Sequence record: BK067783.1
Length of the DNA stretch: 30,340 nucleotides
Strand: one strand, 5' to 3'
Part shown: positions 5,654-30,340 of the stretch, piece by piece
How positions within the stretch are numbered: the first letter of the stretch is position 1
Layout of the letters: every line of letters starts with the position of its first letter
Notes under the pieces: generated by a model
What the model saw: only the letters and a program-made list of their open reading frames with translations
Database searches by the model: none
What the model was told of the DNA's origin: nothing
Program-made: the position numbers and the translations under genes

Positions 5654-5874
5654 GGCATAGGAACTCCAATCTGTTTAGCAAACCTATTGTTCTTGAACGA
5701 AATTCTCCATCCATTTCGTAATGTAATAGAGAAACCACAAAGTTTCTTTTCTATGAGTTTATCAGATATATCCATAAGTTCTGCAACCAAAGGAGGCTCT
5801 TTTTTTCTATCCTCATCAGTGAGATTAATTGGTTCTACGACCTTCTGATTCCGCTTAGATGGGGATGTCGTCAA
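5650..5874 (-). CDS. Hypothetical protein
   Basis: ORF track; ATGA overlaps. Confidence 0.65.
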   Translation of the reverse strand: MTTSPSKRNQKVVEPINLTDEDRKKEPPLVAELMDISDKLIEKKLCGFSITLRNGWRISFKNNRFAKQIGVPMP

Positions 5875-6149
5875 AGCTTTCTCTCCGTTATTTCATTATC
5901 TGGATAACCATCATTTTTATATTCTTTATATGTACTACCAAAATATTCTTCGTCTACTTTAACGCCTAACCTCTGTCTAAGTAATTGAATAGGGAAATAA
6001 AATTCATTATCACCTGAGAGGTCTGACCAATAACTTTGTATAATATCTAAAAGTTCTTGATTGGTTTTAAGTTTAGTTTCATCCCATAGTTTCTGATCTC
6101 TTGTAGCCCAAAACTTCTTTCCTTCTAGACGTAATTCCTCGGAAGTCAT
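5871..6149 (-). CDS. Hypothetical protein
   Basis: ORF track; ATGA overlaps. Confidence 0.65.
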   Translation of the reverse strand: MTSEELRLEGKKFWATRDQKLWDETKLKTNQELLDIIQSYWSDLSGDNEFYFPIQLLRQRLGVKVDEEYFGSTYKEYKNDGYPDNEITERKL

Positions 6150-6301
6150 TTGGAGATCATTTCCCTTGGAGTATGAAAGACTTTATCACATAAGCAACAA
6201 TAGATAATTCCTACAACTGGAACAAATGATTTTCCGTATGCTTGACCTAACTGTGTCGCTGGTCTTTTGCATTGCGGACATTTGATTAATGACTCTGCCA
6301 T
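6146..6301 (-). CDS. Zinc-ribbon protein, first gene of the leftward operon (start revised to ATG 6301)
   Basis: CPQC...CCLC; minus-strand TATA begins at 6331, 30 nt before the ATG. Confidence 0.7.
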   Translation of the reverse strand: MAESLIKCPQCKRPATQLGQAYGKSFVPVVGIIYCCLCDKVFHTPREMISK

Positions 6302-6309
6302 AGAGAAGT

Positions 6310-6402
6310 GTACGGGAACGTACGTTATATAGTTATTGCCTTCATGCCTATTACGAATGACACCAAGCAAGTTATATAGTACGCTAACGTACGGATTAGT
6401 AC
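6310..6402. promoter_or_regulatory. Divergent promoters with palindromic operators GTACG-N4-CGTAC
   Basis: Perfect operators at 6310-6323 and 6379-6392, and a one-mismatch copy at 6389-6402. Identical GTTATATAGT TATA elements at 6324-6333 and 6371-6380. Confidence 0.8.
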
Positions 6403-6403
6403 A

Positions 6404-10656: not shown

Positions 10657-10751
10657 TATCTCTAATAAAAGACTAGAACTTAATAAAGTATGTATGTATC
10701 ATATATCACACAACAATTCTTAAATAGTACAATCTTATAGAACAGTATATC

Positions 10752-11135
10752 ATGGAGTATGGAACGATAATAGTTTTATTCTTAGGTATTTCAATAATGA
10801 TCCTTCCTTCAATTTATACTGAATTACTTCCATGTTCAAACATACTAAACATGAATCAGGAACAGGCAAATTATTATCTCAAAACAAATCCACAATACAA
10901 AACAACAGTAGAAGCTTATTTAGATTGTAGCGGTTCATATACATATATTCCCATAAGTGGATTCGTAGGAGGAATTTTATTTATAGTGTTTGCTATGTTT
11001 ACTCCATATCTAAAATCAAATCAAAACATCAAATGCTTCCAATGTAAAGTAATTCACGATAAGGAAGAAGGAACAGATTATAACGGTAACTGGTTATGCA
11101 AAGATTGCTTGAAGGAATTAACATATGACAAATAA
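10752..11135 (+). CDS. Two-TM protein with C-terminal zinc finger
   Basis: TM-C-x30-C-TM, then CFQC...CKDC; TATA at 10720. Confidence 0.75.
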   Translation: MEYGTIIVLFLGISIMILPSIYTELLPCSNILNMNQEQANYYLKTNPQYKTTVEAYLDCSGSYTYIPISGFVGGILFIVFAMFTPYLKSNQNIKCFQCKVIHDKEEGTDYNGNWLCKDCLKELTYDK

Positions 11136-11589
11136 GAAACCTAGATATTGCAAGTGTGGACATCTATCACATCCAACACATGACACACCTAAATCATTTT
11201 TAGGATTTAAATATCAAGCTAGAAGGGGATGCAACGGAATAAGAAAGATAAATGAAACTACATCTATACCATGCGAATGTAAAAGATTCTTACTTGAAAG
11301 TTATCCTACAAAATATGATAGAATAAGTACATATGTGCTACTTGGATTTGGTATATTTGCCATAGGAATATTTCTATTTACAGCTTACGGAACATCTACA
11401 ATATTAGAGTGTAAAGATCCAACATGTATAAAAATATTAGAAGAAAAAACTTTTACAGAAGGGCAAGCTTTATCGTTTGCCTTTCTGGCTTTTCTATTGA
11501 TTAGTGTCTGGCTTTTTAATTTGTTCTCAGGAGTTATCTTTGATCATAGATACATGTGTAAGAGAGAGAAACGAGATCATCAGGAATAA
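11125..11589 (+). CDS. Zinc-finger plus two-TM protein
   Basis: CKCGH..H...C...CEC N-terminus; two TMs. Confidence 0.75.
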   Translation: MTNKKPRYCKCGHLSHPTHDTPKSFLGFKYQARRGCNGIRKINETTSIPCECKRFLLESYPTKYDRISTYVLLGFGIFAIGIFLFTAYGTSTILECKDPTCIKILEEKTFTEGQALSFAFLAFLLISVWLFNLFSGVIFDHRYMCKREKRDHQE

Positions 11590-11633
11590 ACACTAGACAA
11601 ATATTTAATTATTAGGTATTCTAACGTAGAATT

Positions 11634-11769
11634 AACCAACCATTGAAATTACTGGTAAGAGTGATCCCCCTCACTTTTACCAGTAGTTGTTTGTAACATT
11701 TCATAACACAATAATTCTTTTATAGCTCAATGTTTTAACAGTCTTTACAAATGAAGGGGGAAAATAACT
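11634..11769 (+). promoter_or_regulatory. Structured 5' leader (D) with 18-bp hairpin and loop-to-SD pseudoknot
   Basis: TATA at 11604 (+30 = 11634); stem 11647-11664/11671-11688 with two G-U pairs; loop TCCCCC complementary to GGGGGA at 11756-11761 before the TTG start. Confidence 0.6.
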
Positions 11770-12225
11770 TTGATTAAAAACAGAAACTATGATCCAAAAT
11801 TATTCATAGTAAGCAGACACACAGTTGATGTGGCTTTGCTTCCCGGTGTGGGAAGATTTTGTAAATGTGGTTGTGGAAATAAAATCGATTCAAGACGAGT
11901 AACAAGAATAAGAAACGGTAAAGCTATATCATACATATTAAAACCAGATCCAGATCAAGTATTTTTTAGAAAGAATTGCAAATTTAAATATTATAATATG
12001 ATTAATTCACACAAATCTAAATCTAGTCTTAGTTGTCTGATCAGTCTAAAAGTAATTAATGACATAATACCTTACAGAGTTTTAACATTATACATATCAA
12101 AGAATTCTAAAGAGAATTACAAGATAACACCAGAACATAAGGAACTATGGAATACATTAGAAAAGCTTTCCAGATATTCCTATCAACAAACACCATTAAG
12201 AACACATGTGATGATCAACCAATGA
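11770..12225 (+). CDS. Protein with CxCGCG zinc motif, first gene of the MTase/HNH operon
   Basis: CKCGCG...FRKNC. Confidence 0.7.
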   Translation: MIKNRNYDPKLFIVSRHTVDVALLPGVGRFCKCGCGNKIDSRRVTRIRNGKAISYILKPDPDQVFFRKNCKFKYYNMINSHKSKSSLSCLISLKVINDIIPYRVLTLYISKNSKENYKITPEHKELWNTLEKLSRYSYQQTPLRTHVMINQ

Positions 12226-15085: not shown

Positions 15086-15248
15086 AAAGTCGAGTAGAAT
15101 CTACTCGATTGTGTGTGTACACCTACACCTTTTGTTCCATTCCTAGACAAGAAACTAAATATTTCCACTAGGTAGAGTAGAATTTAAAAAATCGAGTAGA
15201 TTACATTCGATTGTGTGTGTATGTGTGTGTTTAAAAAAAGCACACACA
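15079..15248. repeat. Two 41-bp direct repeats with dyad, TG tracts and hairpin (candidate origin or tandem promoters)
   Basis: 15079-15119 vs 15181-15221 are 36/41 identical; perfect dyad TCGAGTAGA-A-TCTACTCGA at 15090-15108; hairpin 15222-15230/15240-15248. Confidence 0.85.
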
Positions 15249-15350
15249 GACAAAAGAGTACGGTAACAATTACAGTACAATATAAAGATACACAAATGTT
15301 TCCAGTCTAGGCATGAAAACTTTAAAGCATATCAGATACAAAATTATATC

Positions 15351-15491
15351 ATGGATAATTGTTACATATGTAATGACCAGGCACATCTAAAATGTAATGT
15401 ATGTAATAGTAAAGTATGCAAAGAACATTACTTGTTTCATGGAACAAAGTGTATCGTTTATACGACTACAAAATTTGAACGCACCAGGTAA
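15351..15491 (+). CDS. Zinc-finger micro-protein, 46 aa (not in track)
   Basis: CYIC...CNVC...CKEH; TATA at 15321, 30 nt upstream. Confidence 0.7.
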   Translation: MDNCYICNDQAHLKCNVCNSKVCKEHYLFHGTKCIVYTTTKFERTR

Positions 15492-15548
15492 TCTGTATCA
15501 TTCCATGACATACAAGTATCTATTAGCTGGTGGATATTATAGAATACC

Positions 15549-16304: not shown

Positions 16305-16591
16305 AAAAAGATACTAAAGTTAGAATACAATTAACTTGTTTGATGTTTGGAATTTCTATTTTATGTATATTATTAATCAACTTATTTTTAATACCAACCT
16401 TAGAAACAGGATGTAATATAACAGAAAAAGATTTCAAAGGTTCACAATTAGATAAATCTGGTTGGACATTAGAAAAAACTATTAAAGTATGCAAAGATAA
16501 CACTAATGGTTTTAGATATTTTTCATTATGCTTTTTATTACCAGCAATAATTGCTTCAATCGATAATATAACTAGGATCTATAAACAATAA
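16301..16591 (+). CDS. Two-TM protein with Cys-bounded loop
   Basis: TM-C-x25-C-TM. Confidence 0.7.
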   Translation: MKKDTKVRIQLTCLMFGISILCILLINLFLIPTLETGCNITEKDFKGSQLDKSGWTLEKTIKVCKDNTNGFRYFSLCFLLPAIIASIDNITRIYKQ

Positions 16592-28365: not shown

Positions 28366-28776
28366 ATGGAAATTTCTATTCTTGAATATATTGTGTACGC
28401 TTTAATTGGATATTCTTCTTTCGCTGTTCTAATTGTTTCAGCTGTTAAAGAAATTCCAGATAGTAGAGTCTTATCTTTAGTTAGAGTAATTTATTTATTT
28501 CCCGGTATCATAGCATTAATGATTCTTGCAAGCTCTGGAATAAACATAGATGTAAATACAGTAACAACAAACAACTTAATCAAATCCATAAACACTACAC
28601 AAACATGGACAGAAGCTACGACACAATCAAATACTATCATACTTCAAAATCCAGTATGGTCAATGTTCCATTGGTTGTTAGCTATTACTCTAATATTCTA
28701 TATGATAAAACAAATCTTGAACCTGTTAACAAAAGCACCAGCTCAGGGCGTAAGGGAAGATAATGAAGTCGAATGA
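28366..28776 (+). CDS. Three-TM putative structural protein
   Basis: Three hydrophobic segments. Confidence 0.75.
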   Translation: MEISILEYIVYALIGYSSFAVLIVSAVKEIPDSRVLSLVRVIYLFPGIIALMILASSGINIDVNTVTTNNLIKSINTTQTWTEATTQSNTIILQNPVWSMFHWLLAITLIFYMIKQILNLLTKAPAQGVREDNEVE

Positions 28777-30340
28777 TAAGAAGAACTTACCTTCTAATCC
28801 TAATAGTTTTTATATCATCTATCTACATTTCATCAGCTAACGCACAATTCGCAATTCAACCACCAACCGTTAACATACCACCAACAAATGCGTACAATCA
28901 ATTTAATGTAAGCAATGCTACCATTTCAGCAAAGAACTTTATTGCTTCTGTTAATATAGTAGGAAAGAATGGTTTAGGTGTAACAGGTTCTAACAGTTCT
29001 CAAACAATATATCTAACAGCTCCTAATCCATCATCAGGATTACCAACTACTTATTGTCCTGCTAACTTTGGATTTGTTTCTTATAACGCAACGACAAATA
29101 TTCTAGCTTGTGCATTGTTAAATCAAACTGGATCTGGTTCTGGTGTAACATCATTAAATAGTTTGACAGGTGCTTTAACAATAGCCAAAGGAACAAACAT
29201 CAATTCCATAACCGCAGCTGGTAATACTATAACCATAAACGCAGCTGGTTGGCAAAACAATACGGGTTCTAATTTAGGTACAAGTGGTTCTGGTGTCTTT
29301 GCTTCAATGAGTGGATCAATATTGCAATTCTTAAAACTAATATCATCAAATTCCTTTCTAAGTATAACAACAAACTCCACCAATGTTATATTTAATATTC
29401 CAAGTATTGTAACAAAATTAATTGCTGGTACTGGAATATCGGTAAATCAAACATCAGGAAATATTTTAGTAACTAATACGGGTGTGACAAAATTAGCTGC
29501 AACATCACCAGTTGTAGTTAACGCATCAACTGGTCAAGTAAATGTTTCTTGCCCTACTTGTTCAACTACAACAGGAACTATAACAGGAAGTGCAAACGCT
29601 GGTAAAGCTACTGGTTCAGTTGGTGTATTATCAACACCTACAACTACGTTAATCAAAGGCAGAAACATGACAGGTACTAGTCCTATTGTAGTTACAAAAA
29701 CAAATGATACAGATATAGCTATATCATGTCCAACATGTTCTAGTACAACTGGAACAATCACTGGTGGATCTAATATCGGTACTTCTGGTTTTGGTTTCTT
29801 CAAGAACAGTACAAATAATAATATTAATCTAAGAAACTTAACTACTTCAAGATCTGATCTATTTACAATAACTCAATCTTCTAATAATGTTAATCTAGCT
29901 TCTAGTTTCAAATCTAATACTATTGCATGTACGAATCAATTCATTTCTGCATTTACAAATTCAACTGGAATTTATACATGTGCAACACCCACTAATACAG
30001 CTCAAGTAGTAAGCGCAGACAATGGAGTAAGTTTAATTAGTTCACAATTTAATGCAACAGAAACAAAATTAAAATCATTACGTAATTCAACAGCTTATGT
30101 ATTATGGAATCATAATACAACATCAATTACACCTAGCTTCCAGTTTAAAATTAATACAAAGGCTTGTACAAACAATCAATTTATATCAGCAATATCAAAC
30201 AGTTCAGATTCTACATGTAATAAAATGTTACTTAATGCAGTAAGTAAAACTAATTCTTATACTGTTGCATCTACAGATGATATTATATTAGTAAATGCAA
30301 CAGGAGGTAACTATACTATTACTATTCCTACTATAGCAAC
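28773..30340 (+). CDS. N-terminal part of the ~1012-aa adhesin (not in track; continues at 1..1471)
   Basis: Translated by hand with no stop. ATGA overlap; signal peptide ending SANA; about 20 N-x-S/T sequons; internal repeats. Confidence 0.85.
   Translation, partial: MIRRTYLLILIVFISSIYISSANAQFAIQPPTVNIPPTNAYNQFNVSNATISAKNFIASVNIVGKNGLGVTGSNSSQTIYLTAPNPSSGLPTTYCPANFGFVSYNATTNILACALLNQTGSGSGVTSLNSLTGALTIAKGTNINSITAAGNTITINAAGWQNNTGSNLGTSGSGVFASMSGSILQFLKLISSNSFLSITTNSTNVIFNIPSIVTKLIAGTGISVNQTSGNILVTNTGVTKLAATSPVVVNASTGQVNVSCPTCSTTTGTITGSANAGKATGSVGVLSTPTTTLIKGRNMTGTSPIVVTKTNDTDIAISCPTCSSTTGTITGGSNIGTSGFGFFKNSTNNNINLRNLTTSRSDLFTITQSSNNVNLASSFKSNTIACTNQFISAFTNSTGIYTCATPTNTAQVVSADNGVSLISSQFNATETKLKSLRNSTAYVLWNHNTTSITPSFQFKINTKACTNNQFISAISNSSDSTCNKMLLNAVSKTNSYTVASTDDIILVNATGGNYTITIPTIA

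Follow-up and report, generated by a model that had tools for sequence, protein, structure and literature searches.

A conserved stem-loop and a predicted leaderless promoter at a possible operon junction in a spindle-shaped virus of ammonia-oxidising archaea

Archaeal transcription terminators are U-tracts, for which four consecutive U residues already count and a hairpin is not strictly required (PMC8716108), and at haloarchaeal 3' ends a stem-loop often precedes the U-motif (PMC2151090). In Sulfolobus, leaderless first genes are set apart from distal genes led by a Shine-Dalgarno (SD) sequence (PMC2151090), the same split as described below. A different kind of arrangement is known from T4, where the ribosome-binding sites (RBS) of the genes e, soc, 49 and I-TevI are sequestered on long early transcripts and a late promoter separates one half of the structure from the other (PMC3014915). 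Here we compare with these systems a hairpin-containing gap of 180 nt between the open reading frames (ORFs) ORF28 (end at 11589) and ORF29 (TTG start at 11770) of the Nitrosopumilaceae spindle-shaped virus isolate NTT2 (BK067783.1), which is among the uncultivated virus genomes presented in PMC10866085. The window of this study, i.e. the whole stretch of DNA analysed, is the complete NTT2 genome of 30,340 bp; it comes from rhizosphere soil, and the host group is the ammonia-oxidising archaea. An earlier note on this DNA had described the hairpin as part of a riboswitch-like leader of ORF29. To our knowledge, the regulation of genes in the viruses of these archaea is almost unexplored.

The reading that we favour, albeit with middling confidence, is that the gap is an operon junction, in which a plus-strand stem-loop is followed by a canonical promoter, a leaderless mini-ORF and the SD-led TTG gene ORF29, and that it is not a riboswitch leader. 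Our comparison covers three variants of the locus (n = 3), those of the window, of the L004 group (ORF29 protein 89% identical) and of L017 (a second member of the same 90% cluster), two of the three being sisters in this region. Variants were sought in IMG/VR, JGI metagenomes and GTDB genomes, by two protein searches and by a profile search of 1.8 billion proteins, with distant relatives rejected at the confirmation step of locus retrieval. These searches returned no variants of the intergenic region beyond the three and the L008 group, whose ORF29 homologue is 57% identical and whose upstream region is non-alignable. A search of IMG/VR and GTDB with the DNA pattern of the hairpin gave chance matches only.

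The hairpin (11647-11688) consists of arms of 18 bp (11647-11664 and 11671-11688) closed by a loop at 11665-11670 (TCCCCC). It starts 58 nt past the ORF28 stop, and the ORF29 promoter lies another 26 nt downstream of it. It folds more stably than any other of ~20,000 overlapping windows of 50 nt from the two strands (-24.5 kcal/mol vs a mean of -4.75, standard deviation 2.9, z ~ -6.8). The two imperfections of the stem, T11649·G11686 and G11659·T11676, pair as G·U on the plus strand and are C·A mismatches on the minus strand, where the fold is interrupted and weaker; this bears out what the earlier note had said of the stem. Across the three variants 96% of the stem cells are paired, the changes comprising one compensatory G-C to A-U pair and one G·U/A-U switch, with one G·U pair retained in all three. 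The hairpin is real and conserved, and selection acts on its stem as an RNA-type structure of the plus strand. The loop (UCCCCC, UCCCCG, UCCACA) is the fastest-changing part of the element, and on this alignment its sequence appears not to be under selection. DNA identity to the relatives is 0.83-0.94 for the stem arms, 0.67-0.83 for the loop, 0.55-0.58 for the spacer at 11616-11646, 0.90-0.94 for the block 11689-11739 that includes the promoter and 0.67-0.77 for 11740-11769, the values for the flanking genes being 0.54-0.80 (ORF28) and 0.85-0.89 (ORF29).

The riboswitch-like character proposed for the leader is not supported by this comparison. A single helix is conserved in the three variants and no multi-helix aptamer was seen; a further, outer pairing that had been suggested (11638-11646 with 11727-11735) can indeed form in NTT2 with 8 of 9 pairs, but in the two relatives most of it stays unpaired (pairs in 48% of cells). 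The Rfam search of 11590-11800 returned no match at E up to 1, in agreement with the earlier statement that no recognised riboswitch class fits, and with permissive filters the whole genome gave two chance-level matches, both elsewhere; no tRNA genes were found in the genome. At 50% clustering, at least 55 small Cys-rich proteins make up the family of ORF29, and the more distant homologues of ORF29 adjoin the upstream gene without any leader. A small ORF spanning the hairpin (TTG at 11643) was considered and set aside, being not conserved in the alignment.

The promoter grammar of the virus was derived from a 12-nt matrix trained on the upstream regions of 19 post-gap genes, with ORF29 left out. 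The motif to which the matrix converged, AACCTTTAATAG, mostly starts 33-38 nt upstream of the ATG, a spacing that marks these genes as leaderless. Among the 15 genes with the motif at -45 to -24 an SD-like element is found in only two, which upholds the view that most promoters here are leaderless, while an SD-like 4-mer precedes 44 of the 51 promoter-less genes (background rate 0.15). The ORF28-ORF29 gap contains one matrix match above 7 bits, ATTCTTTTATAG at 11714-11725, which at 9.7 bits equals the score of the ORF27 promoter, lies between the hairpin and ORF29 and is identical at 12 of 12 positions in the three variants. An ATG at 11751, offset by 37 from the motif start, is invariant in all three, and the mini-ORF that it opens keeps the +1 frame relative to the ORF29 start in 3/3 variants despite indels of 6 and 12 nt. 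By matrix score, spacing and conservation this is a predicted promoter with a TFB recognition element and TATA box (BRE/TATA) and a leaderless start, as used by this virus. By its sequence, ORF29 itself is marked as an internal cistron: its start codon is TTG, and an SD lies at -15 to -9. Because ATTCTTTTATAG is combined with the invariant ATG 11751 at leaderless spacing, the main ORF29 mRNA probably starts downstream of the hairpin. The leader of 136 nt that had been proposed is not confirmed: the TATA-like stretch upstream of the hairpin (11600-11616) scores less than 3 bits on the genome's own matrix, and the site of 9.7 bits is downstream of the hairpin. A search of the literature for thaumarchaeal transcript-start data found nothing usable.

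The complementarity between loop and SD, which had been the centre of the earlier proposal, exists. AGGGGGA (11755-11761), a G-run at -15 to -9 of the ORF29 TTG at 11770 and thus where the promoter-less genes have their SD-like 4-mers, is complementary over its full length to TCCCCCT (11665-11671), although T11671 is already paired in the stem and the free complement is thus 6 rather than 7 nt. The genome has a single CCCCC and three loci with GGGGG, and the chance of one falling within 150 nt of the other is ~0.03. The loop/RBS pairing, given as duplex energies and not as pseudoknot scores, amounts to -13.7 kcal/mol in NTT2, -9.9 in L004 and -4.6 in L017. The SD G-run is GGGG in L004 and deleted in L017, whose loop reads UCCACA; L004 keeps 5 bp, and the changes at position 6 (loop C to G, SD G to A) are non-compensatory. 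Judged by these variants, the match is neither kept nor covarying in the relatives, and the covariation that had been named as a check of the pseudoknot switch did not appear.

On the operon-junction reading, the stem-loop would be made within the ORF27-ORF28 transcript, as part of its 3' untranslated region or of read-through RNA. It would act via its stem, as a 3'-end or stability element or as an intercistronic barrier, with no base pairing of the loop, and the upstream transcripts would either stop at weak U4 tracts (11675, 11718, 11733) or read through. The main ORF29 mRNA would begin at ~11749-11751, ~20 nt before the TTG and without the hairpin; ribosomes would load on the leaderless mini-ORF of 8 codons and reach the TTG of ORF29 through SD-assisted re-initiation at the 8-nt overlap. 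The complementarity of loop and SD seen in NTT2 would then be incidental, or at most damp ORF29 translation on read-through RNA.

Several observations weigh against this reading. It is based on three locus variants only, two of them sisters here, and both promoter and transcript start are predicted by a matrix that was itself trained on this genome. A bacterial-type terminator scan, which asks for at least 5 U in the 8 nt directly after the stem, does not call the hairpin (its tail is GUUGUUUGU); in and after the stem there are U4 tracts (11675-11678, 11718-11721, 11733-11736) and no U5 or longer, so that a terminator role is no more than putative and read-through likely. The conservation of the hairpin extends to the promoter block, and both surpass ORF28 in this respect, which fits a part in the regulation of ORF29 no less well than one connected with ORF28. 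By composition, complementarity like that of the loop is very rare: none of 3000 random 8-mers equals the NTT2 loop in pairing, and for the loop of L004 p = 0.0017. In L004 and L017 the 5' flank CCCAUAC(AC)CCCC complements the RBS and start codon of its own locus (duplex energies of -15.5 and -15.1; p = 0.036 and 0.019 vs 3000 random genome segments), in L017 with a perfect 7-bp CAUACCC/GGGUAUG helix over the start codon. Finally, the unrelated leader of L008 is highly structured (z = -6.05) and covers its own SD.

A rather unlikely alternative is that the gap holds a gate of the T4 gene e type, in which upstream C-rich single-stranded elements pair with the G-rich RBS or start of ORF29 on read-through transcripts, with no ligand involved. 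The pairing element would be the hairpin loop in NTT2, the 5' flank in L017 and both in L004; long RNAs from the ORF27 promoter would stay untranslated, and RNAs from the promoter at 11714, lacking the anti-RBS, would be translated. The promoter (11714-11725) does sit between loop (11665-11670) and SD (11755-11761), as such a gate requires, and with this placement the pairing could act on read-through RNA only, which is plausible given that the gap has no strong U-tract terminator. The duplex statistics of loop and flank given above speak for the gate, as do the counts of C-runs and G-runs (1:1, 3:3 and 2:2 in the three variants), the loss of both the loop C-run and the SD G-run on the L017 branch, the SD occlusion in L008 and the T4 precedent itself (PMC3014915). 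On the other hand, with three related taxa only, such correlated losses may be due to chance (roughly 0.2-0.3); a shuffled flank occludes the RBS just as strongly (p = 0.65, 0.84 and 0.23), G-runs in AU-rich RNA always finding partners; the non-compensatory changes at position 6 between NTT2 and L004 count against maintained pairing; and the helices were picked from minimum-energy folds and are therefore post hoc. Another strong intergenic hairpin (1936-1976) has a C-rich loop and no G-run nearby, from which it follows that C-rich loops occur here without an SD partner. That a thaumarchaeal virus gates a conserved early-operon gene by transcript isoform, combining a movable C-run anti-RBS, borne by or beside a very stable stem-loop, with a leaderless mini-ORF that heads the RNA of the internal promoter and feeds the SD-led TTG, is likewise doubtful.

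The palindrome could also work as DNA, its 42 bp serving as a binding site for a viral or host regulator, or as a cruciform, that acts on the promoter ~50 bp downstream with no RNA function. This is improbable, albeit compatible with the contiguous conservation of the palindrome with the promoter block, better than that of the flanking genes, and with symmetric changes in both arms, which a dimer site would show as well; moreover, the arm core TTACTGGTAA recurs as the core of a 12-bp site of which the related virus L008 has three copies around a promoter. Yet the tolerated imperfections are all G·T on the plus strand, one of them switching to A-T, a pattern with a chance of ~0.1 for a DNA palindrome and expected for RNA, and arms of 18 bp are long for an operator. 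L004 and L017 retain the long palindrome, but the core shared with L008 is broken in both (TTACTGATAA), and a shared 10-mer has a chance of ~0.1 given the search space; the operator-like core TTACYRGTAA common to the NTT2 hairpin and L008 was accordingly dropped as a candidate, being probably a chance likeness as it is broken in those two relatives. More improbable still is the model of the earlier note, in which a promoter at ~11600-11612 drives a leader of ~136 nt from ~11634 and a loop/SD pseudoknot switches ORF29, possibly in response to a signal. The TATA-like block at 11596-11615, its conserved surroundings (11590-11615, 22-23 of 26 positions matching in the relatives) and the exact loop/SD complement in this genome are what it has in its favour, but the block, at less than 3 bits, is without the CTT...TAG core, and the supposed leader has a canonical promoter within it. 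Covariation between loop and SD is absent, L017 has lost their pairing, the relatives do not keep the outer helix, and neither a multi-helix aptamer nor an Rfam match was found. The same TATA-like block, conserved and ~35 nt upstream of the hairpin base, could instead drive a small non-coding RNA of ~55-65 nt, whose C-rich loop would act in trans on G-rich SDs in the manner of the UCCC loops in small RNAs of staphylococci; GGGG-type SDs complementary to the loop are present at ORF31 and ORF62 as well. With no canonical promoter, no U-tract terminator after the stem and a loop that is not conserved, we regard this as the least probable of the readings.

The features of the locus are collected in Table 1; in addition, AATAATTCTTTTATAGCTCA is an invariant block of the locus. 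Downstream of ORF29, the operon contains two adenine methyltransferases, ORF32 (D12-class) and ORF34 (Dam), as well as ORF37 with a weak HNH match, so that the methyltransferase/HNH content assigned to it earlier holds, with the HNH part being the weak one.

Table 1. Coordinates of the features in and around the ORF28-ORF29 gap of NTT2.
Feature	Coordinates	Strand	Remarks
Promoter motif ATTCTTAAATAG of the ORF27-ORF28 unit	10716..10727	+	9.7 bits, motif start at -36; leaderless ATG 10752
ORF28, final gene of the upstream unit	11125..11589	+	annotation; fast-evolving, DNA identity 0.80 (L004), 0.54 (L017)
AT-rich conserved block GACAAATATTTAATTATTAG directly past the ORF28 stop	11596..11615	+	promoter presumed in the earlier note; single copy in genome
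Variable spacer AACCAACCATTGA (relatives: CCCATAC(AC)CCCC)	11616..11646	+	identity 0.55-0.58, 2-nt indel
5' stem arm	11647..11664	+	one half of the 18-bp stem
Loop UCCCCC	11665..11670	+	sole CCCCC of the genome; UCCCCG, UCCACA in relatives
3' stem arm	11671..11688	+	includes U4 tract 11675-11678
Near-invariant block TTTGTAACATTTCATAACACAATA separating hairpin from promoter	11689..11713	+	first part of the block 11689-11739 (identity 0.90-0.94); single copy in genome; possible regulator site
BRE/TATA-type promoter motif ATTCTTTTATAG of the ORF29 operon	11714..11725	+	9.7 bits; predicted transcript start near 11748-11751
Mini-ORF MKGENNFD*	11751..11777	+	ATG at leaderless distance (+37) from promoter motif; stop overlaps ORF29 start by 8 nt
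SD-like AGGGGGA of ORF29, complement of the hairpin loop	11755..11761	+	
ORF29, TTG start	11770..12225	+	conserved small Cys-rich protein; opens the long genes of the methyltransferase/HNH operon

Other hairpins were noted in the same genome and in its relatives. The second most stable one (11456-11487, -21 kcal/mol, followed by TTTT) lies inside ORF28 and is probably incidental; it was dropped since L004 and L017 do not conserve it. The hairpin at 1936-1976, with a stem of 16 bp, the loop ACCAACCCC and a following T-run (TTCTTTTTATTTTAT), lies between the convergent genes ORF2 and ORF3 and is terminator-like. CCCC is found at five plus-strand loci only, two of which are the loops of the hairpins 1936-1976 and 11647-11688. 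Intergenic regions show no enrichment of C-rich 12-mers (3 of 15). The related genome NTM1 and L008 were scanned for comparable gene-end hairpins, and NTM1 has none as strong. In L008, the 186-nt spacer before the ORF29 homologue (5815-6000) folds into three hairpins, the last of which is attenuator-like: an 11-bp stem is followed by U7, 3 nt before a canonical AAGGAG SD, with no promoter motif between. On the minus strand of NTT2, a weak match to the glutamine riboswitch (10804-10855, 22.8 bits vs a gathering threshold of 35, E = 0.87) was taken as chance.

Further observations concern other parts of the genome. The heptamer ACCAACC has seven plus-strand copies (~1 expected; at 1952, 11635, 21693 and 22060, and also at 16393, 22466 and 28862) and one on the minus strand, four of the copies lying just past gene ends. 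The gap of 463 nt at 15086-15548 contains two copies of a short hairpin (15086-15260), each followed by TTGTGTGTGT, together with (GT)n tracts and the palindrome GTGTGTGTTTAAAAAAAGCACACAC, and is a candidate origin or control region; in L008, CGATTGTGTGTGTGAGC is found at ~7340 after the ORF37 homologue. The divergent promoter gap at 6150-6403 has palindromes of the AACGTACG type beside two TTATATAG boxes, and the syntenic gap of L008 (11580-11660) has three GTTACYRGTAAC sites around a promoter motif; by their sequence these palindromes and sites are probably operators of a diverged regulator. ORF67 (28773-30340) has no stop and runs in frame through nt 1 into ORF1 (1-1471), forming one gene of ~1013 codons, from which the record is seen to be a permuted circular genome. 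BK067791.1 is the same genome, reverse-complemented and permuted.

Overall, a tempting riboswitch call is corrected to the more ordinary architecture of a probable operon junction, made of known kinds of element, of which the conserved RNA stem-loop is a candidate 3'-end or stability element. The locus also yields a clean promoter consensus for the virus, AACCTTWWATAG, ~35 nt before predicted leaderless starts, and shows leaderless first genes clearly set apart from internal ones led by an SD. If the gate by transcript isoform were true, it would give archaeal viruses their first described translational gate of the T4 gene e kind, coupled to a leaderless mini-cistron; either the gate or the coupling through the mini-ORF would, if true, count among the rare examples of post-transcriptional control in an archaeal virus.

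In comparison with known systems, the locus resembles the stem-loops at operon boundaries, i.e. archaeal U-tract terminators with a stem-loop before them and bacterial intercistronic stabiliser hairpins: the NTT2 stem comes after the last gene and before the next promoter, it is conserved with a loop free to vary, and U4 tracts are nearby. It differs from these in having no U5 or longer directly after the stem and an unusually long stem of 18 bp, and in that its 3' ends are predicted only. With riboswitches and SD-sequestering RNA thermometers it shares a structured RNA near the RBS that is complementary to the SD; unlike them, it has neither a conserved multi-helix aptamer nor an Rfam match, and a promoter lies inside the supposed leader. 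A helix of five G-C pairs is, moreover, too stable for an RNA thermometer. As in T4 gene e, the candidate anti-RBS is upstream of an internal promoter and the RBS downstream of it, with no ligand needed; unlike there, a hairpin loop (giving a pseudoknot) or a distant flank would serve as the anti-RBS in place of the 5' arm of a simple hairpin, and the putative system is archaeal and weakly conserved. The likeness extends to operons of the Sulfolobus pattern (PMC2151090), in that the promoter-to-ATG spacing is that of leaderless genes and the SD of ORF29 resembles that of a distal cistron. The 8-nt stop/start overlap of mini-ORF and ORF29 matches other NTT2 gene pairs. Leaderless short upstream ORFs have been described in mycobacteria and haloarchaea; unlike the first cistron of leaderless operons, that of NTT2 is a predicted one of only 8-10 codons, with a peptide that is not conserved.

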